38,256 nucleotides of DNA, taken from NCBI GenBank assembly GCA_002269645.1, contig NIVC01004682.1, forward strand, positions 1 to 38,256. The letters are read 5' to 3'. How positions within the stretch are numbered: the first letter of the stretch is position 1; each line of letters starts with the position of its first letter. This document shows, piece by piece, positions 6,801-38,256 of this stretch. This DNA comes from Macrostomum lignano (lineage: Eukaryota). The notes beneath the pieces were generated by a model that saw only the letters and a list, made by a program, of their open reading frames with translations, ran no database searches and was not told where the DNA came from. The translations under genes and the position numbers were made by a program.

Positions 6801-7062
6801 GTTGACCAGGTGCGGGCAGGGCTGCAAGGGCAAGTGGGTGGCGCGAGGGTTGTCAGCAAGATTTGCGCTAGCCGATAACAGATGGACGTTGAGACAGTCA
6901 CTCAGGGAGACTGACTCAGACAGACAACCAGTCGGACAGATATTGAGACCCTAGAAAAAAACCTTAGTAGACATTCAGACAGACCAACAGAGGCAGCTAT
7001 TATGGCAGTTATACAGGCAGGCAGACAGACAGAAAGACGGACAGACAGACAGACAGACAGCA

Positions 7063-7103
<41 letters not shown>

Positions 7104-7106
7104 CCA

Positions 7107-7147
<41 letters not shown>

Positions 7148-7222
7148 CCAATACAGACAGACAGACAGACAGACAGACACCAAGACAGACAGACAGACAC
7201 CAATACAGACAGACAGACACCA

Positions 7223-7263
<41 letters not shown>

Positions 7264-7266
7264 CCA

Positions 7267-7299
<33 letters not shown>

Positions 7300-14295: not shown

Positions 14296-15328
14296 ATGGA
14301 TTCTATCGAAATCAAGCATATCATCTGTGTTCTGATTCTTTCAATCCAGTACTTTGAAATCCACGCCGGGTCGTCCGAAAGAAAGTGGAGCTCAAGCCGC
14401 GACAGCTTCTTTGACTATGAGGCCTTGAGGTCGCTGAAAGTTTCTTCTGAAATCCAGTGCACTGCCGCTGCCAGAAGTGACTCCGCTGTGCAGCTGGTGG
14501 CGTTCAACGCCAGCTCCGGCCTGTGCGCTCACTTCAGGTGTCGCCTGGACCTGAGACACTGCAGGAAGTGCCGCAATGCGAACAAGGGAGCTCAGCGAGT
14601 GTGGGTGAGTCCTGTGTCAGCAGAATTTGCATTAACATAGTCTGAATTGGCACTTTTCCAAAAAATCTTTTTACATTGCAGACAGCCGGCAGTGACTGCT
14701 GCATCACCGTGCAGCACAGGGTGTCCGGCTCAGTGGACTTTTACCGCGGCTGGACTCAGTACCAGAGCGAGTTCGGCGAGGGACCCGACGGAAACTACTG
14801 GATCGGTAGCTTTGAACTTAAAAAAAATATAAATTTACATGCTACATTACATGCCTTTGTTTAGCTAGTATTCCGCTTCGTGTTAATCTTCACATTTCCA
14901 TCTCAGGCCTGAACTCTCTCCACGATCTCACTGCTTCTGGTCCTCGGAAGCTGAGGATTCTGATGAAGGCGTGGAACGACTCTGAGCACTGGGCTGAGTA
15001 CTCCAGCTTCTCCGTGGGTCCCGAGTCTGACAACTACCGGCTGAGCGTGTCCGGCTTCTCCGGCAGCGCCGGCATCGGCGACTCGCTGGCCAGAAGCAAC
15101 GACTTCCAGTTCACCACCAAGGACGCCGACCACGACGTTCACTCCGACAACTGCGGCTCGCGCTACTTCGGAGCCTGGTGGTTCGCTGACTGCCACAACA
15201 CGCACCCGAATGGACAGTACCGCGATTTCTCGTCAGCCATTGATGGCCCGAGGGCCCAGGGTATAATCTGGAAGTCGCCGTTCGGTCCGTACTACTCGCT
15301 AAAAGAGATCGAAATGCTTGTTCTCTAA
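14296..15328 (+). CDS. Secreted PAN/Apple-like + fibrinogen C-terminal domain protein, copy A (284 aa)
   Basis: Exons 14296-14604, 14682-14805, 14907-15328 (855 nt, in frame, GT-AG). Hydrophobic leader; FReD motifs [51 protein letters not shown]. Confidence 0.9.
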
Positions 15329-17132
15329 AGAAACAGATCTGCTGTTGCTTGTTCTATGAGACTATGATAAACAATGAATCGGTAATGGTTAAATAAGGCT
15401 ATTACTATTTGAATGGAACTTGACTAAATTTGGTAGTAAGTGTTTTATTGTTAGTTGGCTTCAAAATTATAGAGTAAGAAGATTATTTTCCTTCCCTCTA
15501 ACACACTCGTATAGCCTAAATTCTGAAGGCTTCAACTTGATGAGAGGCTTGCCGGGCCTGAAAGCATACAGATCAATCACATAATACTCTGGCCTCCCAC
15601 TCCTGTCAGATGATCAGTGTTTCGGAGGTAGACTATTAATGTATTGATTTTCCTTGCATTGCGTGATTTAATGTACGTGCTTTATTCAGTTCGCTATGTA
15701 CGCTGATTTAGCGCAGGCCAATCTCACCCGACCCCCTCCACGCTGGCTGATTCTGACTGACTGCAATAAATATATATGTATCATCGAGAGGGCTTATTAG
15801 CCCTGTGTACGGTTTACGTTTTAATATCGTCTCGCTTGAGCCTCAGCTCCAAATAGTTTTGGCGGACCATCGGCCTTTTCATTTCTACAGTACAATCCAT
15901 CTCAAGGTAGCATAGATGCGGCGAGCATCTGGGTTTTATAGCTCAGAGAGGACAGCGAGAGACAAACAGGGAGAATCTGTAAAGGTATAAATAAGCTAAT
16001 TTGGAGATTAGGCTAATCCACAAGCCTGTGCGAACTGGCTCACCAAACCAGCTGTCTCGAAATCGCGTTTCCGACTAGAAAGAGGCTCAGCACTTACCTG
16101 CCAACTAGTCCTTAATCGATCAAAGTATTGACCCCGACAGCATAAATGGAGCGCGCTTAAAACCAACAGCAATCACAGGTCTTCTGTACACCTCTATATC
16201 CTCGTCCGTTCATTAAACTCGAACCAATGCAGCCTGCACATTGCCGAATCGAACCCATGGAACATCAGCGCGACATAACGCTACTCTGCCTCTTAGCTGC
16301 AGGGCTGTCCCGGAAGGGACACAACGGGAAGGCGCGGGGGGTACTCAGCACAGGCCGTGGAACAAATGCGAGCCTTCATCCAAGAATTCCAGCGGCTGTT
16401 AAAGACTCTACACTACCCCTGCGTTCATGTCACTAATGAGCTTTGGGATCTCTTTGGGAAAATTGTAGTTTTTTCTTGACATTGCCGCACTAAGTTCATC
16501 ATGCATCCCAATGTTTCAACTACGAAGTATGATGGATGCTGAGAAAGAGCACATGGAAGCTCTTGAAAGTACCTCGTTGTATTTTTGAGGTAATTCAACA
16601 GCATCGCGTGCAGCCACTCTGCTTGTGCCGTTAAAAATTTATGCGCAATTGCCAATTAGCCACTGCCGCAGAATTTCGGTGCTTCTGTGGCAGTAAAAAA
16701 CTGAGTGAGTTTCAAATGACAGTTTCTTTAGCTTTTCTATACCCAAAGTCTACCTTAATGGGCTCTAGCTAAAGCCTCCTAACCCTGCATCTTCCAGCAG
16801 CATCACCTCCGTCAAAAAAGACCACGCATCTGTCTGCTTGGGGCGGGAAAGTTATAAAACTAATGAGGCCCTGCGAGGAAGCCACCCTGACACATGGGAA
16901 GCTTAATCGGAACCTGCTATAAGCCTACTACGTAAGCAAAGAGTTTTCATAAAACGTAAGTTGTGCCAAGACAAAGGCTTTTCATTCATTTGGTGAAGTA
17001 GCTGAGGCATCATAATCCCAGCCCCGATACTGAGTAACGTTAGTGCACTGTTACTTAATACTTACGGCTTTCTGATTCTTATTCTGCATGCCACTGTCTC
17101 GCCAAAATTCAGACAAAGATACAATATCTCCA

Positions 17133-18153
17133 ATGAACTACTTGACTTGCTTACTGCTGCTGGCTGCAGAAACTTCGCTGACATTCAGCGATGCTTTGTT
17201 GACAAGCTGGTGGTCAAGCCGTGACCGCCTCTCTAACTATGAGTCACTAAGGTCGGTCACGGCTCAGTCCAAGATCCAATGTACTGGTACTGCAAGCCAC
17301 GACTCTGCAGTGCAGCTGGTGGCATTCAACTCCAGCTCTCGCCAGTGCACTCACTACCGATGCCTGAGCAGCTTCAGGAAGTGCCGCGATGTAAACAGTG
17401 GGGCTGAAATAGTGTGGCTGAATCGAAATGTAAGTCTTCTCACTGTGCCCTCGTATGGAGTCAAATTTTAATTTTGACTTTTATAGTTTTTCCCCTTTCA
17501 GACCATCAGCAGTGACTGCTGGACCACCGTGCAGCACAGGGTGTCCGGCTCAGTGGACTTTTACCGCGGCTGGACTCAGTACCAGAGCGAGTTCGGCGAG
17601 GGACCCGACGGAAACTACTGGATAGGTAACCATTTGTATGGTTCTATAAGATTTTTATTGGCATTGCTTCTTTGTCTGCAATTTTTAGCTAAGTGACATC
17701 ATAATGATTTTATTTATCTTTCTCAATGTAGGTCTAAACACTCTTCACGATCTCACTGCTTCTGGTCCTCGGAAGCTGAGGATTCTGATGAAGGCCTGGA
17801 ACGACTCTGAGCACTGGGCTGAGTACTCCAGCTTCTCCGTGGGTCCCGAATCTGACAACTACCGGCTGAGCGTGTCCGGCTTCTCCGGCAGCGCCGGCAT
17901 CGGCGACTCGCTGGCCAGAAGCAACGACTTCCAGTTCACCACCAAGGACGCCGACCACGACGTTCACTCCGACAACTGCGGCTCGCGCTACTTCGGAGCC
18001 TGGTGGTTCGCTGACTGCCACAACACGCACCCGAACGGACAGTACCGCGATTTCTCGTCAGCCATTGGTGGCCCGCGCGCTCAAGGTGTGATCTGGAAGT
18101 CGCCGTTCGGTCCGTACTACTCGCTAAAAGAGATCGAAATGCTCATCCTTTGA
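17133..18153 (+). CDS. Secreted PAN/Apple-like + fibrinogen C-terminal domain protein, copy B (280 aa)
   Basis: Exons 17133-17429, 17502-17625, 17732-18153 (843 nt, in frame); leader [19 protein letters not shown]; an alternative ATG lies at 17088. Confidence 0.88.
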
Positions 18154-18853
18154 GGCAACAAAGTTTGCAAAAGTTAATTCTGTCGATGTTAATCTTTATC
18201 CAAGAGAGACTTTATGGACTTATAAATATTCGTGTCAAGTTTTTTTCACTTACAGTTTACTTATTGGATTATATTTTGTAGACGTCATCGTCAAACTCAG
18301 AGCAGAGCACGTAATCAGGTTTTACACAGGTCTGTCGATGAGGTTTATCCAGTACTACGCACAATGAGTGCCTGATTTTCAGTTTCTCCTTTCTGACTGG
18401 GTTTTGTCATTTGCTTGCTCGACTGTTTCTTGGAAATCCTCCAGTGGGATTACGCACGTAGCTACGCGATCTTCAACCAAAACTAGAATCTATCCTTTTG
18501 TTTATTGCATATTGCCGGTAAATAAACTGGCTTTTTCCTCTCCATCGTTACACGCAATTACAAACTCGACAAGTTTAGCTGTCCAACACCTGTTAAGACG
18601 ATAAAGTCAAGTCTCAGACTCTTGAATGTTCATTCATTTGCATTCAGACATGCTGCTCAAGTAGAAAATTCTCGCAAATTCGTTACCGATTTGACGTGAC
18701 ACACTTGAACGTGGGGTTTTATATTATTTGAGTTGCATTTCGAAGGTTCAGTTGTGTTGGTAGTTCAATGCACAGTAGTCTCAGTCAAATACTCAGTCAA
18801 GCAGATCTTGTGTGTCTGGATAACAATGTATAAAAATATAGACTAGGGGAGTA

Positions 18854-19543
18854 GAATGCATGAGGGGGCTTCTGGGACAAAATTTTTCACGTCCTCCATA
18901 ATCCCATTAAATCCATCCATATTATCCCCGACAGAATCAGAAAAAAGGGGGGTCGCACTTGCTCCCCCTTTCGAGGATTATGTTCGAAGTTCGAAGTTCG
19001 AAAACTTCGAACATAATCCTAAATCCATCCATATTATCCCTGACAGAATCAGAAAAAAACGGGGGGGGGGTCGCACTCGCTCACAAAACGTCCTCCATAA
19101 TCCCATTAAATCCATCCATATTGTTCCCGACAGAATCAGAGCACAACAGGTGTCCTACTTGCTCCGAAAACTTCGAACATAATCCCATTAAATCCATCCA
19201 TATTATCCCTGAATCAGAGCATAACAGGTGTCCTACTCGCTCACAAAACGTCATCTATAATCCTCCTAACTAATCCTCCTTCCTCCATGACAGAATCAGA
19301 GCATAACAGGTGTCCTACATAATCCACTGACATCCACCCATAGCATCTTCGAAACAATCAGAAAATAATCTGCATTCTTCTCCCCACATTCAATCCGCAA
19401 CGTGCTACCACATCCCTAAAACTTTAAATCCCCTAACCCAGGGTCCTTACCCTTTGAAAAAAAATTTCATAATAATATGGATGGATTTAATGGGATTATG
19501 GAGGACGTGAAAAATTTTGTCCCAGAAGCCCCCTCATGCATTC
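18854..19543. mobile_element. Non-autonomous DNA transposon (MITE/foldback-like) with perfect long TIRs and internal ~80-bp subrepeats
   Basis: 18850-18925 is the exact reverse complement of 19472-19547. Simplest reading is a TA TSD (18852-53, 19544-45) in an AGTACT site. No transposase ORF. Confidence 0.85.
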
Positions 19544-21141
19544 TACTTAGAGGCTAGGGCTTGGCATTATTGAGCAGTTGCAGGGTTCATTGAAAGCTCG
19601 CTGAGCTGGACGTCCTCTGTTGCACGGTGTTACAACAGTCTGCCATCCATTTTCTCGAGGCTGCTTGAGCAACAAGCCAACAACAAGCAAACCAAAATAC
19701 ATCAGACAGCTGTTTTGAGATCTTAAAAGGGAACATAATTAACGAAAGACAGTGTTACAAGGCGCGACTTTGAGCCGAGGCGTGAACATATGTAGCGTGG
19801 ACAACAGATTCTGGGGCGCCAGGGTCTCAGAGAAACGCCGAGTACACGTGTAGTTCTAAGAGTTTTAAAGGAATTTTCATACTGATCGTTGCATTTAATA
19901 CGAGGCCGGGGCTGTCGTGCGGTTCACTCACTCATGTGGGCCAAGCCCTAAAAGCACAGAGAGTGTGCATGCTTGATGATTAGTAAGTCAAGGTTGCTGT
20001 ACAGCCTGTGTGAGCGCATATGAGTGCCGTGCCTGCGTGCAGTATTGGCGCGCTTGTGCGAGCTCAGGTGAGCGGAATGGCCAGAACTGCCTATGGGTAA
20101 AATTGTCGCTGAAAGCGCTGTGCCAGCGTGTTCACATTATTATTGTTTCATTATGCTATTACTAATGCTGAAGTCACTTCATTCTTAACCGTGAAATAAT
20201 TTAAATTTAATCTTCTGTCATATAGAAACAGAGACTGATCGGTGAGCAAAAATCTGTGAGCAGCTTGCTTCCATTTTCCGCATGTCAATACTGCATGAAA
20301 TATTGCATGCATAATGAGAAAGCCGAGGAGAGAGAGAAGAGGGACCGGGGTGGGGTGTACCACAGAGGCCTCGCTAGTGGCCACGTTACCATGGTTTTGT
20401 CAAACAGCCATGAGACTCCGCTCTGAGCGGCCGTTAGCAGCTGGGCTACATGACTCACTCCTCCGGATATGAGACAGTGCAGTGTTTAAGCAGGAGAGAC
20501 GGCTTCCAACAGCTCCGATCGATCCCACTCCGTAGCGCCGAACCTCCGTTTCTCTATCTCGCCCCCCCCCCCCTGTTGCCCTAGTGCATCGTTACAAGAG
20601 CTGTAAACTTCCTGGTTGCAAGACTGCACCAACCCATCAACTTCTACAGCAAAAAGCCTTGGAAAAACCGAATCCGCCATTCCACGTTAACATTAGCCTT
20701 AACTCAAAGCTATTACCAACGCATCGCATGGTTCTGTTGTGGACTGTCTTGTAGATCCGGTCTAATGGTGTTGTATTGACACAGAATTCAAACCTAAAAT
20801 AGACACATGTCATGTTTCCTATAGCATAAAATCCCTCCTCATATAGTATGGGTGAAATTGTATTTTTGTTGACTAAAAATCAAACTGAATCCTGTCGCTA
20901 GTGAAACTGAGCTGAAAGAATTGATGCAGACAGTTGGACTTGGAGGCTGAACAAATAAAGAAATCGCTAGTTAAGGGATAAATTAAGACAGGAAAAACGC
21001 CAGATCACCTCGACCCTACCTGACTTCGAAATCATCAGAACCTTTCCGTTGCGGAGCCACTGGGCTGAGACACAGCTGCAGACCGACTATTTTACATAAA
21101 TCGATACAGCTCGAAAAATCGAAGACCAATAAATTATCTCT

Positions 21142-22151
21142 ATGTGCTCGACAAACGGATTTAAATGGATGATCATGCTGTTCGCAGCTCTAAATCCCCG
21201 CGTGGCCCGAGTTGTCTCAGCTGAGAGAACTTGGCGGCTGAGTCGAGACGGCCTTGCCGAATATGAGGCTGCTTCTTCGTTTTGGGCACGGAGCGACATC
21301 AGCTGCATGGCGACTGCGGACTCGGACCCCGCTGTGCAGCTGGTGGCGTTCAACGCCAGCTCCGGCCTGTGCGCTCACTTCAGGTGTCGCCTGGGCCTGA
21401 GACACTGCAGGAAGGGCCGCAATGTGAACAAAGGAGATCATCAAGTGTGGGTGAGTCCTGTGTTTAGCAGCTTTTGCATCCCCATAGTCTGAATTGGTAC
21501 TTTTGCAAAAACTTTTTAGATTGCAGACAGCCGGCAGTGACTGCTGGACCACCGTGCAGCACAGGGTGTCCGGCTCAGTGGACTTTTACCGCAACTGGAC
21601 TCAGTACCAGAGCGAGTTCGGCGAGGGACCCGACGGAAACTACTGGATCGGTGGGGTTGAATGCTGTTTAATATTCTGTAATTAAATTTGGATAATTGGA
21701 ACTATGTTCAACTTTTCAACTTCCCAGGCCTGAACACTCTTCACAAGCTCACTTTATCTGGTCCTCGAAACTGGTCATTTTAATGACCGCCTGGAACGAC
21801 TCTGAGCACTGGGCTGAGTACTCCAGCTTCTCCGTGGGTCCCGAGTCCGACAACTACCGGCTGAGCGTGTCCGGCTTCTCCGGCAGCGCCGGCATCGGCG
21901 ACTCGCTGGCCAGAAGCAACGACTTCCAGTTCACCACCAAGGACGCTGATAATGACGTTCAGGCTACCTACAATTGCGCCGAGAGGTTCGTCAGTGCCTG
22001 GTGGTTCTCCAACTGTTTTGACACCAACCCGAACGGAGAGTACAAGGACTCCGCTTCAGCCATTGGTGGTGCACCTAATCTGGGAATTCTTTGGAAATAT
22101 CCCTTCGACAGAGAATACTCATTGAAAAAGTTTGAAATGCTGATCTTTTAG
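21142..22151 (+). pseudogene. PAN-like + fibrinogen C-terminal domain gene, copy C, with a 1-nt deletion early in exon 3 (pseudogene or consensus error)
   Basis: Exons 21142-21450, 21527-21650, 21728-22151. CGAAACTG at 21766-73 lacks one A relative to the R-K-L of the paralogs, giving TAA at 21781-83; the downstream frame is otherwise intact. Confidence 0.75.
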
Positions 22152-22737
22152 ATACTGTGGGTGATTTTGGAAAATGTATCAATGAGGACCAGTGATTATC
22201 ATCTATTTAATTACTTATTTACTTTTTTGAGCGAAATGATGGCTCTTGAGCGAAGAAATAACATCAGAAATATGCTTACATTCTTAAATGTAATCTTTAA
22301 ATTGGATGTAAACCTGTTTTCTGTCTGCACTCTCAATCTATCTATTATAAATAAAATCTGAAGTTGTAAAACGTGAGTTTAAAAAAATCTTTTAAACTTG
22401 TAACTGTTTCTTTGATAAGAATGAAATTTTTGTTAAGATTTTTTGTTCTCTCAAGACGTTTGAAAGTGCACACTTAAATAAAGTGGTAAGATCACATAAA
22501 AGGTTGACTTTTGCTGATCTACTATAAGAATCTAAAGTGGATAATATCTTATCTTATCTATCTATCTTCTTGAAGTTTTTTTAAGGTTTCAGAGATAATG
22601 CGCGTTCATCCTGCAGTCCCTTGAAACAAAAGTTGAAGTTCATATCCATCTTTCCCCCAAAATAATGACCAGCAACTATTTAACATATTTAACTTAAGCT
22701 TCGGAAGTGCTCTGTGAGGAAGCCCAAAAGTATGTTG

Positions 22738-23046
22738 ATGTGGATTGCTGTGGATTTCTGTGGATTGCTGTGGATTTCTGTGAATTGCTGTGGATTTCTG
22801 TGAATTGCTGTGGATTTCTGTAGATTGCTGTGGATTTCTGTGGATTACTTTGGATTGCTGTGGATTGCTGCGATAGCTGTGGATTTTTGTGGATTTCTGT
22901 GGATTGCTGTGGATTGCTGTGGATTTCTTTGGATTTCTTTGGATTGCTGTGGATTGCTGTGGATTGCTGTAGATTGCTGTAGATTGCTGTAGATTGCTGT
23001 GGATTGCTGTGGATTGCTGTGGATTGCTGTGGATTGCTGTAGATTG
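22738..23046. repeat. 10-bp satellite (TGTGGATTGC / TGTGGATTTC), about 30 copies
   Basis: Directly visible; source of the QSTAIHSNPQ repeat ORFs. Confidence 0.96.
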
Positions 23047-24314
23047 AATAATAGAGCAGAAATTTGCTAGCAACTGAGGCGAAAAAGTGTTTGCTTCGAG
23101 CACTGAACGAGCCAGGTTGAGAAGCTGCAAACGTTACTAAAAATAGCGATTGCTGGCGGATGCCTTGCCGGAACCGGGAACCAATGGACAGCAGATACAA
23201 AGCGAAACAAAAGCCGAAGTTGCTGGCTTCGCTTCCTTGCAGCTTTTGTTCTGATCCATGAAAGAAATTTGAATCACCCTGGGAAGCGAAAGAAAGCAGT
23301 CGTTGACGCTCGCTGAATTGTGCTAAGATACTCCTTCAATAGTCAAAACTGCCTGCTTAGCAGTAAGTCGAAGCAAGAAGTAATAGATGTAGGGAATATC
23401 TCCAAAGCTCCTTTCTGCTTTGTAACTCACATTGACGTGTTAGACAAACTGAGTTTGGTGTGCAGCAGTCTTGTGCGAGGTACACCTGTGCACGTAAATG
23501 CTCCTGAAGCATTACGGAGCCTCTCCAGTGCAAAAATCGCCACCTTTTTTAACCCGCTGCCTCTAATGCATTTCCTTCTTTCCAACTCTTTAACAACGGC
23601 GCAAAATAAATCCTGTTATCAAATTCTGCAGGGAAGTGTTCCCTTTTTAACAATTTTTTAACACGGAGGAAAATTTGTTATTTTCTTAGACAACTCAAAC
23701 GCATCTGGAGTGAGACGTCAATCAATCATTTCGTTATAACAATTGTGAACTTCTTCCCCTTAGGCTCTTTGCTGTTATAGAACGGGGGCCAGTCACCCTA
23801 CAGGGCTCAACACGCCTAGGAGTGGGTCACAATGGCATGGGTTTTTCAAGTCTCATGCCTTGCAGGGGGCCCTTATTTGTTGCCAGGTGGTCCATTTTTC
23901 AGTAATAGCTTCTAGATTTCATGTTTTTACTTAGTTGTCTTAGATGTCAATCAAATTTTTGATACATACACATGCAGACTCTGAGTTTTCAACGCTACAA
24001 AGACAAACTGGTTTTAATATCTTCAAATTCAAGTTATGAGTCGGCGAATAATCAGAATGTAGCTAAAAATGCGTAAATAAGAAACCGAATTACTTATACT
24101 AATTGATACACGTATCCAGTCTTAGGTTAAGACAAATCGAAGGATTCTAGTGATGCGTTTGACCGTAAACAAGTTGTTTGCAAAGTGTTTCAGTCGTATA
24201 TTGATCGAATATCACAAATTAAGTTATATCTTTCTTTCTGATAGAATTTCCTGGTCACTAGGGCAGTGTTTACTTAACAGAGTCAATTGATCTCGATGCT
24301 CAAAAGGCCCAGTT

Positions 24315-25335
24315 TTAAAGAATTAGCATTTCAAATTCTTTCAGTGAGTAGTAGGAGCCGAACGGATACCGCCAGATGACGCCTTCAACAAATGGGCCTC
24401 CAATGGCCGCACTGAAATCTCGGTATTGTCCATTGGGGAATGAATCAGAGCAATCTGAGAACCACCAGGCTCCGAAAAACTTGTCCGCACAGTTTTCGTG
24501 ATAGGTGTCGTGATCAGCGGCTCTCGTCGAGAATTGGCGGCCATTGTTGCGAGACATCGAGTTGCCGACGCCGGCGCTGCCGGAGAAGCCGGACACGCTC
24601 AGCCGGTAGTTGTCCGACTCGGGACCCACGGAGAAGCTGGAGTACTCAGCCCAGTGCTCAGAGTCGTTCCACGCCTTCATCAGGATCCTCAGCTTCCGAG
24701 GACCAGAAGCAGTGAGAGCGTGGAGAGAGTTCAGGCCTGGGAAGATGCGGACGTCATGGCGGTGTTTGTCATTGAAGTCCGAGTTGGAAAAGAAAGCGAA
24801 TGGAGCAGATCTGGGATGCACTCACCGATCCAGTAGTTTCCGTCGGGTCCCTCGCCGAACTCGCTCTGGTACTGAGTCCAGTTGCGGTAAAAGTCCACTG
24901 AGCCGGACACCCTGTGCTGCACGGTGGTCCAGCAGTCACTGCCGGCTGTCTGCAAAAGAAAACAAGTGGGTTGGTTTAGCAAACATAATACTCGAATTTT
25001 AGGAGTGGATTTTTGTCACTCACCCACACTCGCTGAGCTCCCTTGTTCGCATCACGGCACTTCCTGCAGTGGCTCAGGCCCAGGCGACACCTGAAGTGAG
25101 CGCACAGGCCGGAGCTGGCGTTGAACGCCACCAGCTGCACAGCGGGGTCACCGGTGGCAGCGACAGTGCACTCGATTTTGGACTGAGCTGAGAGCGACTT
25201 CGCGGGCTCGTAGTCGAAGAGTCTCCCCGGACTGAATCTCCATTTTGTTATTCCAGCACTGGCCTGGCACCCGATAAGCTGGACTGCAGCGAGTGTCAGG
25301 AACCACACGGCTGCCAGAGCGCTTACCGGGCGCAT
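24315..25335 (-). CDS. Secreted PAN/Apple-like + fibrinogen C-terminal domain protein, copy D (285 aa)
   Basis: Exons 25335-25024, 24949-24826, 24736-24315 (858 nt, in frame); leader [27 protein letters not shown]; same intron positions and phases as A-C. Confidence 0.9.
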
Positions 25336-26192: not shown

Positions 26193-26684
26193 TCAGTAGA
26201 GCTCTCGAATTCTCTGCACCGACTTCTGCCAGTTGTCAAACCACCTGGTCTCGAGGGTGTCAGCCTCCGCAGCAGCTCGTCGGATCTCCTCCATTACTTC
26301 GTGGAAGAATTCCTTAAACGCGGCGTAGAACTCCCTGCGAGCCTTGTCCGTCTCGTTGTGCGCCATGGTGGTCTTGGCCGTCACGGTCAGGGTGGCGCAG
26401 CGCAGAGTCTTGGGCGGCTGCTGCTCAGGCGGCTGGAACTCGTTGAGCGGCAGGCCGGACCAGTTGGCTTTGCCCCGCGGGATCAGCTGATCCTTGTTGG
26501 GGTCGTGCAGTGGCTCGCCGGCCATCTGCTTGCGCAGCAGGTCGGCAGTGGGCAGCAGGTCGGGTGGGACGCGGCCGCGTTCAACTTCGTCGGCTGTGAG
26601 GAGGCTGTCTAGCTTGATGAAGAGCAGCTCGGACAGCTGGCTGACCTGGCTGGCAAAGAAGTCGGCCTCGCGGACTACCAGCTC
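26193..26684 (-). CDS. CCDC180: CCDC180 terminal coding exon
   Basis: Acceptor ccgcAG at 26685; 164 codons ending RIRELY-TGA. Confidence 0.85.
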   Translation of the reverse strand, partial: ELVVREADFFASQVSQLSELLFIKLDSLLTADEVERGRVPPDLLPTADLLRKQMAGEPLHDPNKDQLIPRGKANWSGLPLNEFQPPEQQPPKTLRCATLTVTAKTTMAHNETDKARREFYAAFKEFFHEVMEEIRRAAAEADTLETRWFDNWQKSVQRIRELY

Positions 26685-29600
26685 CTGCGGTGGCGTGGTG
26701 GAGTGCGGAAATGCGGCGGCAGTTGCTCTTATGAGCGCTATCATTGCATTGAGGGACAGGCATTCTCAGGCTGGGTTCTCAGCAAGTGACAAGCCTTAAA
26801 TTAGCACGAAATCTGAGTAATCTATTGGGTTGACACTTCCTGTCTTTCTGTCTGATTCCGCATTGTTAACAAATTCTTTTAGATTGGCTGGAAAGAGTCC
26901 TGTGTTTGTCAAGATACTCGTCACTAGTATGTTTTGCCTACTAAAAGTATTGTTGTGCCCTGAAGAATCGCCCTCACCGTTACTTGTTATGAATCGCTCC
27001 CCACCGTTACTTATTCCTTCAATGTTAGCCTTGATTCTTTACAGTTATATCTATGGCCTCAATTCCTGCTATGCTTACATCTTATTTCCTAAGTTAAAAT
27101 ACAACTGTTATCTGCCAAGCTCGATACACAACACTGACGTCGCCATCCTCGTTGGGCGAACTACCGCTATGCAAGCCCGACCGTGCCCAGGTCTGGCTAA
27201 CTGCCTTTGAAGCGCTTGCTAGAGCCAAAGGCTGGTCCGATACTACTGAGAGGAAAACCATCGCTGACAACTTTCTTGCTTGCTGTGGACTGACTACATT
27301 GGAAAAACTGCAAAGCCTAATATCACCGCGCGCTGTAACAGAGTTGTCGTTTACTGACATCAAAGCAGCACTCACCTCCTATCTGCGTCCGAAGGAGAAG
27401 CTTACTATCGCAGAACGCGCACGTTTTTTTACGATGCAGAAACTACCTGTTGAGCCAGTCACTGACTTTGTCATCAGATTGCGGCATGCGGCAGCCGATT
27501 GCAAATTTGACTCACTCAAGACGCATCAAAGTTCTTTGGAAGAATTGATACGAATGGCACTGATCGCCGGACTTCGTGACGGCCGGAAGCAACAACGTGT
27601 GCTTGAGACATTGCAACTCACTGAGCTCTCCGTTTCTGAGATTGTAGACTGCATTCGAAACATGACCCAAGTTGACAAGTTCGTCTTAAAACAGATGGAA
27701 ACGACAGGAGGCCCCTCGGTGCCACCCGCGCAGACTGCTGCCACAGTTCAATCCGATGACTCGACCCTTCATTATACTCAGTCACAGCGACCTGACAGAG
27801 GCGGCACTTGCCGGAAAATCACGGCTTGTCGATATTGTGACAAGCCGCATCCTGAAGGAAAATGCCCAGCTTTTGGCAAGATCTGTTCTAAGTGCGGAAA
27901 AAAAGAACCACTTTAGTGCTGTCTGCAAATCAGCGGCCTCTCGACCCGTACATCACACCACAGCTGATGAAGAAGACACAAGACTTGATCCGCAACCTAC
28001 AACAACAACAACAACAACAGAGTACGCTGTCAGTTCGCAAAAGCAGCGTCAGATGGCGCGCTTCGAAGCTTGGGCGCGAACAAAGGCCGCACCGCCGGCA
28101 GAGTCCGGGGCGCCGGCGTCAGCCAGCAGACAGTCGACGTAGCGCCGAGTCCTCGCCTGTCTCCGCCGGTAGGGTGCCTGCAACGTAAGTAGCAGCACCT
28201 CCTGCACCGGCTTCGGACAGTAGGCCTCGGCGCGGATGATGTGGCCTGCCAGCTGGAGTCGCCGACGGCGCAGCAGATCGCTAGGACGGGCCAGGCCGGC
28301 GCGATGATAGAGCGCCGTGTTGGTGACTCGCTCGTTGCCGATCTTGAAGGCGGCGCGCAGCAGGCCAGCGTGCGCCGCGTCGACTTGAGCCTCGAGCGAG
28401 TCTGTCAGCGTCCAGGTCTCGGCGTTGTATAACAGGACGGTCTCGATCACCGACTGGAACAGCGCCGCCCTCTGGCGGTCCGGTAGGGCCTCGGACTGCA
28501 GGACTGACCTTATAGAACGAAAGGCAGCCCAGGCAAGTCCTCGGCGACGCCGCAGATCCTCGCGGACGTCGGGAACCAGACCGCCGAGGTAGAAGAACTG
28601 CTGACATCTTGGAAGCTCACTCGCCTGTCCGTCAGCGCCTCGGCAGAAGATTGCAGCCTCGGTGTCGTCCGGCACGCATAGCACGACGGTCTTCTGCGTG
28701 TTGACCACCAGGCCGACTCTCGCCGCAACGGCAACCAACCTATCCAGCTGTCGTTGGGCGCCCTCGACGGTCGAGGACAGCAGGGCGAGGTCATCGGCGT
28801 AGCCAAGCACGCTGAGCCGTCTCTCCGGTTGGCGTCGACCCACGCGTCGCCGCAGCAGGAAGCCGCAGCAGGAAGCATGGAGCAACCTACGACCGTGCTC
28901 CATCTAACCGACCCCCTACACTCAATCGAAGCCACGACCGAAGCAGTGCGCATCAATGACAAAAGGCTAGAGATGCAAGTTGATACGGGTGCATCCGTCT
29001 CCGTGTTATAGAGCGCGCAGTGGACCAAGTTGGGCCAGCCACCACTTCTACGCTGCAACCGACGCCTAGAGGCTTTTGACGGGCATGTGATGCGGTCACT
29101 CGGCAAGATGGCTACGACTGTAGAGCTACGAGGGCGTCTACACTCGGCAGAATTCATTGTGGTGACTTCCGCTAAACCGTATGGCTTGCTGGGTCGGGAC
29201 CTCCTCGATTCTGATGGTCTCTTCCACACAGAGTCACCAGCCAGCAACACAGCTGCGGAGCACCTGCCCACCATCAGAGGTGTCAAGGCCTGAATGGAGT
29301 TGAAAGATGGTGCTCGACCACAATTCTGCCGTGCGCGCCCAGTTCCCTTGGCCCTGGAAGACCAGATCAACGCTGAACTATACCGTCTTCACCGACTAGG
29401 TGTCATCGAACCAATAGAAGGCCCAGTCAGTAATTCTTCCCACGTGGTATGGGTGAAAAAAAGGATGGATCACTGCGGATGTGCGCAGACTATAGTGTGC
29501 ATGTCAACTCAAAGATCAAATCAGATTCGCATCCGATCCCACACGTGGAAACCATGTTCTCGAAACTAAAGAATGCCAAGACATTTGCCACCGTCGACCT

Positions 29601-32600
29601 GCGTTCCGCATACTGGCAGATTGAGCTAGACGAAGCGGCGAGAGATCTGTCAGTTATCAATACGTCCGCGGGCTCTATCGAGTAAATCGATAATGGGCAT
29701 GAAAAACGCCTCTTTTATCTTTCAAAGAACAATAGAGTCCATTCTAGGGGACATAAAGGATTTACTGATCTACCAGGACGACATTCTTGTCCACGCACCA
29801 GACAAAACAACCCTAGAAAAGCGTCTTACTGCCGTCCGGACGCGGCTCACTGAAAAGCGCGTGACCATCAACGAGTCAAATTGCATTAGCTATTGCGATT
29901 CCGCCTCATTCTTAGGCTTTCGGATCTCTGCTGCAGGCATAGAGCCCAATGATCGCGTGGTCGAGAAAATTCGTCATGTGTGTGCACCTGCAAACAAATC
30001 GGAGCTCGCCCACTTCCTCGGGATAGTCATTTTTTGGGCGGCTGATCCCGAACTTTGCGGGCGAGACTGCACCTCTTAACAGACTGAGAAAGGCCGGCAT
30101 ACCTTTTGTGTGGTCGGATGAATGCTCCAGGGCATTCGAGAGTCTCAAGATAGAGATTGCGTCAGCGCCTGTCTTCCAACCATACAGTCTGACGAAAGAG
30201 CTCACGCTCACCACCGATGCGTCCAAGGGAGCGCTCGCCGCCGTGGCAACGCAGGATGGCCATCCCGTCATATACGTGTCACGCAGCATGTCTTCCGCTG
30301 AGGCCAACTATTAAAACATAGAGAGCGAAGCTCTGGCTATAGTTTGGGCGACTGCACGTCTAAAACATTACTTCCACGGCCGACCCTTCACCATCCGTAC
30401 CGACCATCAACCACTTCTGCGTTTGTTTGGGTCTGGCACCGGCATTCCGCTAAATGCATCCGCACGGATCGGCCGTTGGGCGATGTACCTGATGCAGTTC
30501 GACTACCAAATACAGAATGTACGTGGCAGCAGCAATCCGCACGTTGACGCTCTCTCAAGACTGCGTTTTAAGGGCAGCACGGTTGATGACAAGACAACTT
30601 TTGAAGCAATTAACTCAGTGGCTTTTGAATCGCCCGTTATTGACGCCAGAAGGATTGCCGCTGAAATAGACGTCGACGGCTTTGCACAGAAGATATTCAA
30701 TCGGGTGCGACAAGGAAACTGGATGAATTGCAGCCAGGCAGAAGCACAATTTAAGAAGGTTGCCGAAAAATTGACGCTGGAGAATGGCCTGCTCTACATG
30801 CAGAGGCGCGTATACATACCTCCTCGTTTACGACAGACCGCCTTCAACACGATTCAAAGCACACATTCCGGAGTGCAGGCTTCCTACAATTTGCTATCTG
30901 CGACCTGTTGGTGGCCTGAGATGCAGCATGATGTCGCTCAATATGTGCAGCGCTGCCCCGGGTGCAACCAACTGCGCCCACACGCTGGGCGTGACAGAGA
31001 CCACTGGCCCCCGTCAACATACCCATTCCAACGGATTCATATGGATTGGGCATTCGTAAAGGACGCTGGAAACACTATAATAGTTGTGGACGCGTTCTTA
31101 GGCTGGATAGAGGCCTTCCCTAGTCGCGACCGGACAACTGACTCCGTCATTCGGTGCCTCACAACAGTATTCACGCGCTTTGGGGTTCCAGAGGTTGTTG
31201 TATCAGACAACGCGCCCGAGTTTACCCGAGCAAACTGGAATCACCGGCATACTACCCGCAAGCGAACGGGGCAGCTGAAAGAGCTGTGCAAACGGTCAAG
31301 TCGGCACTGCGGGCCTGGTCGGAAAGATTAACGCATATGAAATTCAGCCACTTCCTGCAAAAGGTGCTCCTGCATCATCGGAATTCTGCTTCGTCCCGAG
31401 GAGGCTGCCCCGCCGAAATAATTTTTGGATGACGACTCCGTGTCCCGGTTGTGTCGCACTTTGAACAGGGTGACAGCGTCATCTACACGCCCAATAGTTC
31501 TGCCGTTGGCAACCCAGTGACTTTCGTCATGACGGCTGGCCGCAATACGGCTTGGATCCTGACCGAGGACAACCTTCGCTTCACCAGCACAAACCAGATC
31601 GCCCCACTAGCCTCTCAATCGCCAGGAGTTGAGTCAGAAGATGAGGAGGACCAACACGCTCCGGTCACCAGGGAGGAGCCTGGCACTGCTGAGGACAAAA
31701 GCCCCGAGCCTGGAGAGGATACGCTCCCGCGAAGAGGAAGCAGGAACCGGACCGCGCCTGATCGCTTTGTGTCATGAACTATTTTCCGATTTTCGAAAAA
31801 CTTTAATACTGCAACAACATAAGCTCCACCAAGAGGGGACATGTTGTGCCCTGAAGAATCGCCCTCACCGTTACTTGTTATGAATCGCTCCCCCATCGTT
31901 ACTTATTCCTTCAATGTTAGCCTTGATTCTTTACAGTTATACGAGCATCTATGACCTCAATTCCCCACCAAAGCAGCTAAAAGCCCCAGCTTTCCTTTTC
32001 TTTCTTTAAGACCTGCTATGCTTACATCTTATTTCCTAAGTTAAAATACAACTGTTATCTGCAAAGCTCGATACACAACAAGTATGATAGTAGGAGTCGT
32101 TTTTAAATAACTGGTAAATAATTTGCCGGAATAAGGGTCTGAAATTCAATACTTTTATAGCTCGTAGCTCATAGACAGAGTATGTAAGCCCCTACATTAC
32201 GAGTGCATTTCCAGTGCGAACAAACTATCGTTACCATGAGAGACCCAGGTAAAAGGACTTGCGCCAAATACATGCTTGTTCGGCACCAGGTAGCTTTAAC
32301 TATCTAGCTCTCAGTTAGTGACCTTTCCTTTAGTTAGGCCACGGAACAGACTCTCACAGGACTAAACAGATCATAGACGCACCTGCTTGTCGGTCTTCAG
32401 TGCGGCTAGGGCGGCCAGAAGCTCCTCGTGGCGCTGCTGCTCGGCGCGGCAGACAGCCTCCAGACGGTGCAGACGCTCCGGATGGCCAAGTGCCGGCGAC
32501 AGCGTCTCCTCGTGTTTGCGCCGTCGTTGCTCCAGCTCCGTCAGTGCTGACGCCGCCTCGGCGGACAGCCTGTCGAGGCCGGCGCGCACCGATTGGACGC

Positions 32601-35600
32601 AGCGTTTGTAGAGATCCTCGAAGGCCAGTCGCGGGATTTGCTCGGCAAGGCGTTCGAGTCGTTCGAGCTGGTTGCGCAGCTCGATCACGCAGGAGTTGTG
32701 ATAGGCGTCCGCCTGGCCGAAATAAGCCTGCGGATGCGCGGAGTTACGACTTGGAGTCACTGTAGGTGACAAACAATCCGAAACATTTTAGGTGATTGAC
32801 TCATTGATTAAGCGGAGTCCAAACGCAACGACATGACGGATCGAAGACAAAAACTTCACATTAAGCAAGAAGGCGTGTCACATTACAGAGTTTAGACAAT
32901 TGTTTCTACGAAGACAGAAGGTTCTCGCTCACCTGCAGCTTCGAGATAATCACCTCCGAGCACTGGTCGAAGGTCTCGTGCAGCGCCTGAGGCCGGGTGA
33001 CTGGCCGGCTGCCCTTCTGCCGGTAGTACAGCTCGGCAGCCAGCAGCATGCCGTCCAGAGCCTCTCGGCAAATCCGCCTGACTCGGCCAAGGAAATGCTG
33101 CGCCTCAGCCGGGTCCTCGCCCTCGCCGAACACCATGTACTTTTTGTCGAGGCGCTGGTTTTTGGCAACAAACTTGCGCGAACTGGCAGTTTGAAGAAAA
33201 GGGTTGAAAACCGATCAGGACAAACTTAACCAGTACTCTTAGAACTTTTTTTCCAAAAAAGCCAGATGAAAGTACTTAAATTTACGCGTAAATAATTATT
33301 CGACCAAACCATAATAAAAATGAAAGGCTTCACAAGCAATCAGAAGTGCATCTGTAGGAAAGTCGGTCTTACTACTACTCTTGTGAAAGAGCCAACAGAC
33401 AGACATGTGCAAAAATGAAATAAATTTGAACAGGAAAAATTTAGTTTACTTTCAGCTAGGGTGCAAAAATATCGAATAAAATTGATTTGATTATAAATGA
33501 AGAATAGCAAAAGCAAGCAACTGGCTTTGTGTGCTCAAACTGTTTGAAAATAAAAAAACAGATTCGACTGTTGATTACGCCATGGCATCCTGCAGCTCCT
33601 TCTCTACGAGAGCCTTCAGGTCCTGCAGCATGTGGCCACCACCTGCTGAGGCCTCCTGGATGGTGCTGATGCGGCTGCTCTGCCGACCAGTCGAGTTTCG
33701 AATGCCGGCCCTTTAAAGTGGAGAGATTCGAACCAATGCTGGAAGACTTCCGGCGCTGCATCGAGCTGGTTGAGCTAACGAAGATGCTGGATAAACCAGA
33801 GCTCATCGTCCCAAGTTGGGTCAGCTTCCAAAGCAAAACAAATTTGAAAGCATTTTACCTGCCCTAATAAGTTAGTATGGTGCTGTAAAAATAAACAGTG
33901 TAAAATTTTCCTACTCAAAGTGTTGTTAATCCAAGTCAGCTAAGTTTGGTTTAGCTACTGAAAATGCAAATATCACGGTACAGTCACATTCTAGAGGCAA
34001 TACGGGTTTTATAGTTCAGTCGGAAACTTGCATGGAGACAGTTCTCCAGGTAAAGTACACGACGGGCCGGCCTCGGCTGGAAGACGAGTCGATGGCAAAT
34101 TTTAGAAAATAAAAACCACTAAAACAAGGGAACAGAGAAAGCTCATAAACAAAGACAGGGAATTGTGTTATGAACTTAGGAGAAAATAAACAAACTACTT
34201 TGCCAAATATGATTCAGTTCCTATTGCTTTAATTCTTGTCGCCCAAGACAGCCCTGGTAACGAAGAACTCACGCTGATGTCCTGCGGTTCACTGGCGGAT
34301 GAGCGCCGCCTCCACCGCCTCCCGTCGGCTGCTGCTGCTGCTGCGGCTCCCCAGACTCGCGTCTCGACGCCATCTTGGTGACCGAGGCGTGGCCCGGACC
34401 TTGCAGCGACGGAGTGTGCGTGTTGTCACCTGTGCCAGCTGCCTGCGATGCCTGCAAAATTGACAAACCAAGTTTGCTTATAAAACTTCGATCTGAGTAT
34501 CGAATCTGAGTATCTGTCTAGAGGCAAGTCATCCACTGAAATCCACTGAATGTCTCAAAATCACCTGCTGCTCCTGTTGGGGCTCTGCATCTCCAGGTTT
34601 CTTCTTTCTGGCTGCCAGCTTTCTGTCTTTGGCACCGGCCAGGCCGCCGGCACCGCCGCCAGCGCCTCCGGCTTCGTCTCGGTCAGCCTCGATCACCACC
34701 TCGCCGCCGCCGTGCGCTCGCGCTCGCTGGGTGCGCATGATGCGCTTGATGACCCCGGCTGACGGTTCCTCGGGCGGCTGCTTGCCGGGCCGGCTCACTG
34801 GAGTCGGCTGGGTGCTGGGCAGTCGCACTAGCTGCTGTTGCCTGCAGGAGTGGCAAATAAGTTGTGGTTTTAAAGGCTCTCCGACACGACATCCAATAGG
34901 ACGTAAGAAATTTCTCACCGTAGTTGTGTCTCACCATAAAGATCAAGAAAGCACAAAGTATATGGTGTTATTTCTGAGCATTCATCTTGCCCTAATGCTA
35001 TAACACTTTTAGAAATGAAAAGTTAAACACTTTGCCTGTGACATTTACCTGCTTGTCGCGGTCCCGCCAGTTCCGGCAGCGTCCGGAGAGCTCGAACTCC
35101 CGGCGGCTGGTGCCGCGGCTGCAGCTTCGTCAACAGTGACAACCACAGGCGGCGGCTTCTGCGTGCCGATGCAGTTCAAGTAGACGCTCCGATCGTTGAA
35201 CATGTCGAAGATATCGTGCAGCCCGCCGTAGAGGTCCTCGGGTCGGACGGTCTCCTTGTCCAGGTTCGGCCGGGCGCAGGCGTCCACGCGTTTGGCAAGG
35301 CTGTCCAGAGTCTCCACGAGCTTCAACGATTGCGAGTTGCTGTCAGACACCTCCGCTTTGATTTTGACCTGAGAATTGAAATTGATGCGAAAGTTTGGCT
35401 TAGCTTTGGACTTCCTGCCTTTATGAACAAATTAGTACATAGAAAAGTTGATCATCTAATGAGACAGCGCACGCGCGTTCAAATTTCAATTTATGTCAGC
35501 GCAGAATGTCATTCCTCGATCATCTCAAAATTTGTACTCATTTTTGCGTACCTGAGTGTTGGTGAGCCACCGCGCCACCTTCTCCATGAACACCAGGTCC

Positions 35601-37933: not shown

Positions 37934-38256
37934 TCCCTGAATCTGTCTCTCCGCTCTGATTCAGTCCTGATCTGCCTTTCTGCTCAGCCTCAGTCCCTGA
38001 ATCCGCCTCTCTCCGCTCAGCCTCAGTCCCTGAATCCGCCTCTCCGCTCTTCGCTCAGCCTCAGTCCCTGAAACCGCCTCTCCGCTCTTCCGCTCAGCCT
38101 CAGTCCCTGAATCCGCCTCTCCGCTCAGCCTCAGTCCTGAATCCGCCTCTCGCTCAGCCTCAGTCCCTGAAACCGCCTCTCCGCTCTTCCGCTCAGCCTC
38201 AGTCCCTGAATCCGCCTTCCGCTCAGCCTCAGTCCTGAATCGCCTCTCCGCTCAGC
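37934..38256. repeat. ~30-40 bp minisatellite (GCTCAGCCTCAGTCCCTGAATCCGCCTCTCC), cut by the window end
   Basis: Directly visible, with unit-length jitter. Confidence 0.93.

Follow-up and report, generated by a model that had tools for sequence, protein, structure and literature searches.

The window analysed here is the whole of a 38,256-nucleotide stretch of Macrostomum lignano DNA (contig NIVC01004682.1, positions 1 to 38,256 of the forward strand). By self-BLAST, it holds exactly four copies of a paralogous gene, three of them (A, B and C) in direct orientation on the forward strand and one (D) inverted on the reverse strand. Each copy consists of three exons separated by GT-AG introns. 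Exon 1 of gene A (14296-14604) encodes a signal peptide and a variable N-terminal part; it is followed by intron 1 (14605-14681, 77 nt), exon 2 (14682-14805, 124 nt), intron 2 (14806-14906, 101 nt) and the coding part of exon 3 (14907-15328, 422 nt). Gene B comprises exon 1 at 17088-17429, exon 2 at 17502-17625 (124 nt), intron 2 at 17626-17731 (106 nt) and an exon 3 coding part at 17732-18153. In gene C, exon 1 lies at 21142-21450, intron 1 at 21451-21526 (76 nt), exon 2 at 21527-21650 (124 nt), intron 2 at 21651-21727 (77 nt) and exon 3 at 21728-22151. On the reverse strand, gene D has exon 1 at 25024-25335, exon 2 at 24826-24949 (124 nt), intron 2 at 24737-24825 (89 nt, GC 0.52) and an exon 3 coding part at 24315-24736. 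A relic fragment of a fifth exon 2, located at 19593-19640 on the reverse strand, is identical to exon 2 of D at 37 of 48 positions (77%, z = 14) and provides a picture of a non-homogenised copy.

The sequences of all four paralogs mark them as predicted secreted fibrinogen-related-domain (ficolin-like) proteins, belonging to an M. lignano family of more than 30 members. The gene D protein matches Pfam PF00147 (Fibrinogen_C) with 152.5 bits (cut-off 22, E = 2e-44) over profile positions 40-218 of 221, and the same domain is present in all database relatives. PF00147 was the sole match in the Pfam search, which returned no IgSF domain. The first ~40 profile positions, corresponding to the A subdomain, are unmatched; a cysteine-containing region encoded by exon 1 is found there, itself without a Pfam hit, and it may represent either a divergent A subdomain or something else. 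Best matches among solved structures are ficolin-1 and ficolin-2 (E = 2e-36), with the B and P subdomains covered. This alignment takes in the acidic calcium-site motif and the NC..WW..C region; any binding of carbohydrate or acetyl groups is a prediction from the alignment over the P subdomain. Ficolins, tachylectin 5 and other fibrinogen-domain lectins are thus near counterparts, but the M. lignano protein has no collagen-like stalk.

Comparison of the four copies at the nucleotide level, which concerns this one window, revealed a homogenised block of 413 nt in the mRNA. It takes in 122 nt at the end of exon 1 (14483-14604 in gene A), all of exon 2 and 167 nt at the start of exon 3, and its breakpoints are sharp and lie inside exons, at -122 in exon 1 and at nt 167 in exon 3 (A-D). 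Within the block, pS is 0-0.05 among A, C and D, and 0.00 in exon 2 of the same three genes, against 0.57-0.84 for all pairs in the 5' part of exon 1 and 0.59-0.79 for each pair but A-B in the 3' part of exon 3. The last 122 nt of exon 1 are homogenised in C with A and D, with four sites differing between D and A. Exon 3 of D differs from that of A at 3 positions in nt 1-167 and at 88 in the remaining 255. Exon 1 of B is not homogenised (pS 0.33-0.42 in its block part), carries a 9-nt deletion and has 12 extra nt before the donor.

In exon 2, C and D are identical, and four nucleotides spread over 3 codons set A apart from both, the variants being either private to A (nt 21 and 23) or shared with B (nt 67-68). 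An earlier note on this DNA had stressed that all four are nonsynonymous. The count is right, but the 4:0 split is not significant alone, about 100 of the 126 sites being nonsynonymous. The differences private to B are all found close to one end or the other of the exon (positions 3, 4, 5, 7 and 123). In exon 3 of A, nt 1-167 belong to the family-wide block, and nt 168-422, which form the variable P-domain part, are homogenised with B only. The 19 differences between A and B in the 422 nt are clustered at both ends (positions 2, 5, 9 and 14; seven sites at 337-359; five at 413-421), with only positions 65, 119 and 305 falling within the central ~320 nt, in agreement with the figures of the earlier note. 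Exon 3 of C opens with a diverged patch of about 65 nt, in which a 1-nt deletion leads, with the canonical acceptor, to a frameshift and a stop; it is then near-identical to A and B until about nt 215 and variable beyond. This deletion, the part of the block at the end of exon 1, the break at nt 167 of exon 3 and the relic exon 2 had all been missed by the earlier note.

Homogenisation extends to synonymous positions. Between A and D, exon 2 and the start of exon 3 contain 89 codons with the same amino acid, of which 87 are identical; for the variable parts the figure is 36 of 62 (Fisher p = 4e-10). The same test of block against variable parts gives p <= 3e-4 in five of six pairs, with values of 1e-7 to 4e-10 for A-C, A-D, B-D and C-D, and all six pairs are significant in Sawyer-type run tests (p <= 0.006). 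Across pairs, 87-100% of same-amino-acid degenerate codons in exon 2 and the start of exon 3 are identical, whereas only 59 of 94 would be expected if codons were drawn from the block's own usage. Purifying selection alone does not freeze wobble positions, as had been argued before, and codon bias is excluded by this comparison as well. GC3 reaches 0.74-0.83 in homogenised segments (0.78-0.79 in the tract confined to A and B) versus 0.52-0.66 elsewhere.

Could such a pattern arise with no conversion at all, either by selection at the nucleotide level (on codon usage, RNA structure or an overlapping element) or in young copies whose variable parts and introns were hypermutated? The GC3 richness of the block, the long antisense ORFs that cross it and the invariance of its protein sequence in the core family would fit. 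However, several synonymous codons per amino acid are used in the block (six for Ser, three each for Ala, Gly, Arg and Thr) and yet are identical between copies position for position, while same-amino-acid codons outside the block differ about half the time in the same genes. Neither uniform constraint nor targeted hypermutation predicts pair-specific shared segments such as the 3' part of exon 3 in A-B, intron 1 in A-C and exon 2 in C-D. Variability climbs toward exon ends, opposite to what a splicing-enhancer constraint would produce. Finally, the frameshifted copy C still retains the block; since its frame is broken and the block is kept nevertheless, protein-level selection on C is not what keeps the block identical. 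Of all the explanations considered, we regard this one as the least probable.

Introns behave differently. Intron 2 has exactly the lengths reported before (101, 106, 77 and 89 nt in A, B, C and D), and the claim that it is not alignable between any copies holds too: in none of the six pairs does alignment of intron 2 beat shuffled sequence (z from -1.3 to 1.0). Similarity of intron 2 and of the flanks of the four genes is at random level. For intron 1, only A and C are alignable, with 51 of 59 positions identical (86%, z = 17); by its sequence, this likeness appears to be a tract, or a shared history, taking in an intron. Moreover, 22 of 26 residues of translated intron 2 of gene D match a read-through stretch of the UniRef model P0001, which represents a different M. 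lignano paralog; P0001 shares the D-type intron 2, and its C-terminal part is about 46% different. The earlier description of the homogenisation as exon-confined is thus correct as regards the diverged intron 2 but fails in other respects: the outer block boundaries lie inside exons 1 and 3, intron 1 is alike in A and C, the A-B tract ends at the stop codon rather than at the exon end, and intron 2 of D recurs elsewhere.

Within the block, variable sites crowd within 15 nt of an intron boundary (12 of 60 positions versus 16 of 353, p = 1.5e-4; in gene B alone, 9 of 45 versus 4 of 246), so the fading at exon edges noticed earlier is real. In addition, relationships shift along the gene. A is nearest to C in the exon-1 part of the block and in intron 1 and nearest to B in exon 3, and C and D are identical in exon 2. 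At the level of the whole family, nearest neighbours differ between N- and C-terminal parts. Sharp-edged tracts of identity in a mosaic, synonymous homogenisation beyond codon bias, nearest relatives that change from segment to segment and raised GC3 make up the standard signature of interlocus gene conversion, the process proposed in the earlier note. We consider it likely, on these sequence patterns, that the best explanation is recurrent, homology-limited interlocus gene conversion from genomic DNA, acting on a layout of constant scaffold and variable binding domain. Seen in this way, the locus is a clear though not unusual instance of paralogs that copy sequence patches from each other.

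Genes A to D are old tandem duplicates. Their neutral sequence is saturated, be it in introns, in the flanks on either side or at synonymous positions of the coding parts that vary, and the relic exon 2, with only 77% identity, also speaks for this age. The central block would be kept near-identical by recurrent, short, non-reciprocal copying between the genomic DNA of paralogous copies. Tracts would form only where donor and recipient can still pair. Diverged short introns would act as heterology barriers, and because they block pairing, each exon segment would be a conversion island of its own, in which identity decays toward the intron boundaries. On its outer sides, the block ends where the constant scaffold gives way, throughout the family, to N-terminal and P-domain (ligand-binding) parts that vary, and there selection for differing binding regions probably purges homogenised variants. 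Weighing against conversion, introns of 72-106 nt have escaped fully, for which tracts would have to be very short or highly sensitive to heterology. Likewise, the 124 nt of homology offered by exon 2 are short for efficient recombination in animals where this was measured.

An alternative donor is the transcript. If the spliced message of one paralog served as a repair template through RNA or cDNA, exonic sequence alone would be homogenised and recipients would keep their own introns. The block is indeed contiguous in the mRNA, with both ends within exons, and is split in the genome by two unalignable introns. A and B share variants on either side of intron 2 (nt 67-68 of exon 2; nt 19, 53 and 122 and the whole 3' part of exon 3) although intron 2 itself cannot be aligned between them. 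Synonymous divergence far below intron divergence, the cDNA-donor criterion applied to fungal ribosomal-protein paralogs (PMC6993855), is likewise observed. The cDNA template, offered as one option in the earlier note, is nevertheless not supported. Both introns are kept in four of four copies, and the window contains no intronless copy or fragment. As Derr and Strathern reportedly found in 1993, cDNA recombination classically removes introns. Among the four genes of the window, tracts continuous over exon-exon junctions together with intron loss were not found. Differences gather at the exon 1/exon 2 and exon 2/exon 3 junctions. In a cDNA these would lie well inside the molecule, and the edge effect tracks genomic intron positions. 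Introns are not consistently spared, as intron 1 is co-homogenised in A and C and the intron 2 of D is common to another paralog. The 3' UTR is not homogenised between A and B, though it is part of any cDNA. A 3' bias is expected of reverse transcripts, yet across the family homogenisation is weakest in the 3'-most coding stretch. Retroelement remnants do occur in the window. The "active RT elements" of the earlier note are, however, fragments only, none with an ORF longer than 302 aa: a partial reverse transcriptase on each strand, one of the two scoring below the Pfam cut-off, and an integrase. We therefore consider a transcript donor improbable. A genomic one is favoured by the intron 1 common to A and C, the D-type intron 2 in another paralog and the position of variable sites near intron boundaries.

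It might also be argued that the identity was produced by assembly or polishing, the true differences having been erased when short reads were cross-mapped among near-identical paralogs, of which there are more than 30, or when repeats were collapsed. The family is large, and the genomic pieces of the block (122-167 nt) are of the size at which short reads map to multiple places; the block exceeds typical short reads only once its three exon pieces are joined. The 1-nt deletion of gene C sits in a GG run. Block identity could have been inflated by polishing a long-read assembly with short reads. Against such an artefact, private variants persist in the middle of the block (those of A in exon 2, and the pair shared by A and B), the breakpoints are sharp and block GC3 is raised. 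In about 20 paralogs, UniRef models, which are not identical to the window genes (P0004 is 98% identical to D, and P0010 is a mosaic), carry this invariant block joined to variable parts that differ. Furthermore, cross-mapping presupposes high identity; it could exaggerate the pattern, not create it. We judge an artefactual origin very unlikely, and return to conversion between genomic copies.

The homogenised block encodes the B-subdomain scaffold. In 18 core paralogs it is nearly invariant, with a majority fraction of 0.97-0.98 as against 0.64 and 0.74 in the variable parts. Distant family members vary within the block; it therefore does not reflect an absolute structural requirement.

A literature search yielded no paper on gene conversion in Macrostomum lignano or in its lectin family. 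Regional gene conversion is described for protocadherin clusters in teleosts and mammals (PMC1852091, which deals with the fugu clusters and cites Noonan et al. 2004). There, too, tandem paralogs contain a stretch with over 99% identity, synonymous sites included, alongside parts of the same coding sequence that have diverged strongly; raised GC3 of the homogenised region served as a criterion as well, and repeated regional conversion with selection for diversity elsewhere was the explanation (PMC1852091). Apart from the different protein family and phylum, the protocadherin region lies within one large variable exon, whereas the M. lignano block is split by two short, unhomogenised introns. 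Fungal ribosomal-protein paralogs undergo concerted evolution for which a cDNA donor was proposed, and their synonymous divergence is likewise far below that of introns, homogenisation being limited to coding sequence (PMC6993855). Those pairs, however, are dispersed housekeeping genes with high expression, and their homogenisation extends over the entire CDS; in M. lignano only part of the CDS of a large, tandem or dispersed lectin family is affected, and one co-homogenised intron, an intron type recurring in another paralog and the edge effect at intron positions point to genomic donors.

A model combining divergence-dependent conversion with purifying selection, in which exons keep converting and introns escape, was put forward for the HMA4 triplicate of Arabidopsis halleri, also made up of tandem paralogs with mosaic divergence (bioRxiv 10.1101/2025.10.29.685298). 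In HMA4, long introns escape and short ones co-homogenise, while in M. lignano even introns of 72-106 nt have escaped. That such very short introns should escape in full, flanked by exon pieces that are near-identical, goes beyond what current divergence-dependent models predict for short introns. A further related system is that of the FREPs of Biomphalaria glabrata, likewise a large invertebrate family of secreted fibrinogen-domain lectins, whose diversity is reported to be shaped by gene conversion among members (PMC7588048). In FREPs the fibrinogen domain is preceded by one or two IgSF domains, in contrast to the M. lignano protein, and the reports concern somatic variants and diversification, not germ-line homogenisation of a constant block as in our window.

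The locus thus offers, at nucleotide resolution, a clean flatworm example of a large lectin family holding its scaffold constant while its binding domain diversifies. The family represents a natural test of minimal tract length, heterology sensitivity and the debated cDNA-donor idea, in a laboratory model where such tests are feasible. On the practical side, the shared block will mislead gene trees, orthology calls, short-read mapping, transcript assembly and the design of RNAi and probes for this family.

A more far-reaching reading would be intron-sparing, RNA- or cDNA-guided concerted evolution of the block, family-wide, in an animal germ line, with the block perhaps also providing homology for reassorting modules; we hold this to be a long shot. 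The mosaic model P0010 joins the N-terminus of A to the C-terminus of C and hints that variable N-terminal and binding-domain modules might be reassorted among paralogs.

Self-comparison of the window revealed exactly four related copies of a fibrinogen-type lectin gene, A (about 14386-15329), B (about 17208-18151) and C (about 21232-22150) on the forward strand and D (about 24314-25220) on the reverse strand; a protein-level scan added one further weak fragment only. Each gene has three exons, separated by GT-AG introns at positions common to all four (A, 14296-14604, 14682-14805 and 14907-15328; B, 17088-17429, 17502-17625 and 17732-18153; C, 21142-21450, 21527-21650 and 21728-22151; D, 25335-25024, 24949-24826 and 24736-24315). 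A, B and D are open throughout and encode 284-295 residues with a signal-peptide-like N-terminal start. The gene D protein matches Pfam Fibrinogen_C with 152 bits (profile positions 40-218 of 221); among solved structures, ficolin-1 and ficolin-2 are its best relatives. Our gene models and comparison of exons and introns reproduced every figure of the earlier note: intron 2 measures 101, 106, 77 and 89 nt in A, B, C and D; C and D have the same exon 2, from which that of A departs at 4 nt, all nonsynonymous; exon 3 of A and B differs at 19 of 422 nt, 4 of them within the first 14 nt, 12 within the last 86 and 3 between. The all-nonsynonymous pattern between A and C carries no weight alone, because about four fifths of sites are nonsynonymous.

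The near-identical block is made up of three pieces, which adjoin one another (413 nt) in the mRNA only: 122 nt at the end of exon 1, exon 2 in full (124 nt) and 167 nt at the start of exon 3. At either end the block breaks off sharply within an exon. Exon 1 of A, C and D shows 4-9 differences in its last 122 nt and roughly 30-50% just upstream, while exon 1 of B is not homogenised; exon 3 of A and D differs at 3/167 positions in the first part as against 88/255 in the remainder. Synonymous divergence (pS) between A and D is 0-0.05 within the block, and exon 2 shows none among A, C and D. In the flanking coding sequence it is at or near saturation, amounting to 0.57-0.84 in the 5' part of exon 1 for all pairs and 0.59-0.79 in the 3' part of exon 3 for all pairs but A-B. 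Where A and D encode the same amino acid, 87/89 codons are identical in exon 2 and the exon-3 part of the block versus 36/62 in the variable parts (p = 4e-10), a contrast significant in 5/6 pairs. Codon bias was rejected as the cause of this identity. Within the block, Ser is encoded by six different codons and Ala, Gly, Arg and Thr by three each; codons drawn randomly from the block's own usage are expected to match at only 59/94 positions.

Relationships among the copies change along the gene. The closest partner of A is C in the exon-1 block and intron 1 (51/59), and B across the whole of exon 3, the 3' variable part of which is common to A and B only (dS 0.16). Exon 3 of C begins with a diverged 65-nt patch, followed by ~150 nt near-identical to A and B. 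Longest-run permutation tests were significant in 6/6 pairs. GC content at third codon positions (GC3) is 0.74-0.83 in all homogenised segments, the tract restricted to A and B included, and 0.52-0.66 in other coding segments, intron GC being mostly about 0.3. Raised GC3 is the footprint expected from GC-biased conversion, and the same criterion, used for protocadherin clusters (PMC1852091), fits the homogenised segments described here. The mosaic relationships, run tests and GC3 make interlocus gene conversion among A-D, as the earlier note had proposed, a well-supported explanation.

Other explanations fit less well. Uniform purifying selection was rejected, since C is frameshifted and different pairs are closest in different segments. 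Unequal crossing-over does not suffice by itself, because the A-B tract goes no further than the stop codon, the A and B 3' UTRs being at random similarity, and because introns were not co-inherited. Over-polishing of the assembly could have removed genuine differences from the block, but private variants are still present there and the same constant block is seen in database protein models. Recent duplication followed by hypermutation was dismissed on two grounds, the segment-specific sharing and a relic fifth exon 2 of 48 nt (19593-19640, reverse strand) that is 37/48 (77%) identical to D (z = 14). This relic sits between B and C, with no exon 1 or exon 3 detectable nearby, and shows how far exon 2 drifts once exchange ceases.

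The earlier description of the homogenisation as exon-confined holds only in part. Intron 2 is indeed unalignable (0 pairs beat shuffled sequence), so that within the window it is common to no pair, and intron 1 is common to A and C only; the coalescence of exon sequence is therefore far more recent than that of introns. However, in A and C the similarity of exon 1 extends across intron 1 to exon 2, and a D-type intron 2 recurs in P0001, a database protein from a different paralog. The P0001 model reads through its intron 2, where 22/26 residues match the translated intron 2 of D; its exon-3 block after the read-through matches D and ~46% of residues in its C-terminal part are different, which means that this intron is common to distinct paralogs. 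The similarity of B intron 2 to a read-through in P0027, another family protein, is too weak for use. Variable sites in the block are concentrated within 15 nt of intron boundaries (12/60 versus 16/353 further in, p = 1.5e-4), also in B alone (9/45 versus 4/246). Under splicing-enhancer constraint, conservation should rise towards exon ends, whereas it is observed to be lower there. Three observations, the shared intron 1 of A and C, the D-type intron 2 and the clustering at exon edges, thus favour genomic DNA as the donor, with homology as the limit. A heteroduplex unable to extend into the non-homologous intron would leave differences clustered at exon edges.

A cDNA donor, also raised in the earlier note, has been proposed by the same criterion of dS versus intron divergence for fungal ribosomal-protein paralogs (PMC6993855), whose CDS-limited homogenisation is comparable to that of A-D. 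For the four genes studied here it is not supported: the intron loss it predicts is seen in 0/4 copies, and exon-junction positions are interior in cDNA, yet variable sites cluster there. Nor did we recover the active reverse transcriptase (RT) elements supposed to lie nearby; the RT and integrase matches found at 28-31 kb are fragmentary, lie on both strands and fall in ORFs no longer than 302 residues. They comprise an RT C-terminal fragment (29693-30079, forward), an integrase (30423-31331, forward) and a second RT fragment (28049-28903, reverse), all lying between degenerate LTR-like repeats (26951-27133 and 31842-32080). This ~5-kb degenerate LTR-type retroelement (26951-32080) separates the two parts of a reverse-strand host gene with DUF4456 (26193-26744 and 32371-32772, profile positions 154-193 and 41-150). 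What could still involve a contribution from spliced templates is the complete escape of introns of 72-106 nt between almost identical pieces of 122-167 nt. In the divergence-dependent conversion model for HMA4 (bioRxiv 10.1101/2025.10.29.685298) long introns escape and short ones are homogenised with exons, unlike the short introns of A-D. For the four sequences compared, such escape requires either short tracts with strong heterology sensitivity or spliced templates.

Database search yielded more than 30 M. lignano relatives (45-98% identity), all with PF00147; beyond these, identity does not exceed 45%, the nearest proteins coming from cnidarians, molluscs, annelids and vertebrates. P0004, one of the M. 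lignano proteins, shares 98% identity with D, and another, P0010, matches A without difference in the N-terminal part, which places the window in M. lignano or a very close line. When the four window proteins were aligned with 21 database members, 18 core paralogs proved near-invariant in the block (majority fraction 0.97-0.98; 67/97 columns invariant in its exon-2 and exon-3 parts), as against majority fractions of 0.64 in the N-terminal variable part and 0.74 in the C-terminal 84 residues. Substitutions inside the block are numerous in the more distant members P0017, P0021 and P0027-P0029; the fold therefore tolerates change there. Judging by alignment with ficolins, the constant part corresponds to the B subdomain and the variable C-terminal part to the P subdomain, which carries the calcium-site motif and the segment from which ficolins and tachylectin 5A build their ligand pocket. 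At exon-3 nt 167, the nucleotide breakpoint coincides exactly with the family-wide limit between constant and variable parts, which suggests that selection for different putative binding domains sets the outer limit of the block.

The N- and C-variable modules have different nearest neighbours: the N-terminus of A is that of P0010, whose C-terminus is that of C, although this chimera could be a gene-model or transcript-assembly artefact. A Mantel test of N- versus C-variable distances is dominated by three distant members and uninformative alone. Many public family models (P0001, P0002, P0003, P0007, P0022, P0023 and P0027) are fusions of neighbouring paralogs, intron read-throughs or joins to retroelement domains, P0022 being joined to an RNase H domain; automated annotation was evidently misled by the shared block.

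The phenomenon is of a known kind, akin to regional concerted evolution of tandem receptor and lectin families and to intron escape in HMA4. Here it occurs in a flatworm fibrinogen-domain family, for which we found no prior report; a literature search combining Macrostomum with fibrinogen or gene conversion returned nothing specific. An exact 47-nt block pattern was absent from the metagenome collection, and exact-protein look-ups for DNA or transcripts of the family protein P0005 and the D exon-3 ORF gave no match.

Two of the genes bear unusual changes. In gene C, exon 3 lacks one nucleotide 39 nt from its start (GG to G) and has 13 substitutions within the first 65 nt (21728-21795); with the canonical acceptor the gene is frameshifted and hits two stops. 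P0010, the database protein nearest to C, is intact and has the family consensus where C is broken. Gene C is thus a pseudogene, a user of an alternative acceptor, or a sequencing or assembly error. In exon 2 of gene A (14700-14706), Cys-Ile replaces the Trp-Thr of the whole family, the Trp being a highly conserved fibrinogen-domain position; P0010, with the N-terminus of A, has the consensus at this site. Gene A may be decaying, or Cys-Ile may be a strain difference. The relic exon 2 likewise has Cys for the conserved Trp of the WTT/WTV motif. Antisense ORFs of 98-112 codons cross the homogenised exon-3 part in A (14903-15205, reverse), B (17734-18030, reverse) and D (24498-24836, forward), probably as a by-product of GC3-rich codon usage.

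The relic exon adjoins a perfect 76-nt inverted repeat (18850-18925 and 19472-19547) that encloses a tandem array (19001-19318) of an 82-nt unit, about 4 copies long, an arrangement like that of a foldback or MITE-type element. Satellite or minisatellite arrays occupy 167-2425 (24 nt x 94), 4252-4637 (23 nt x 17) and 5058-6328 (52/184 nt x 21/6). Further arrays are (ACAG) x 72 at 7013-7299, a 10-nt unit x 31 at 22735-23046, in the interval from gene C to gene D, and 39/69-nt units at the window's end (37947-38256).
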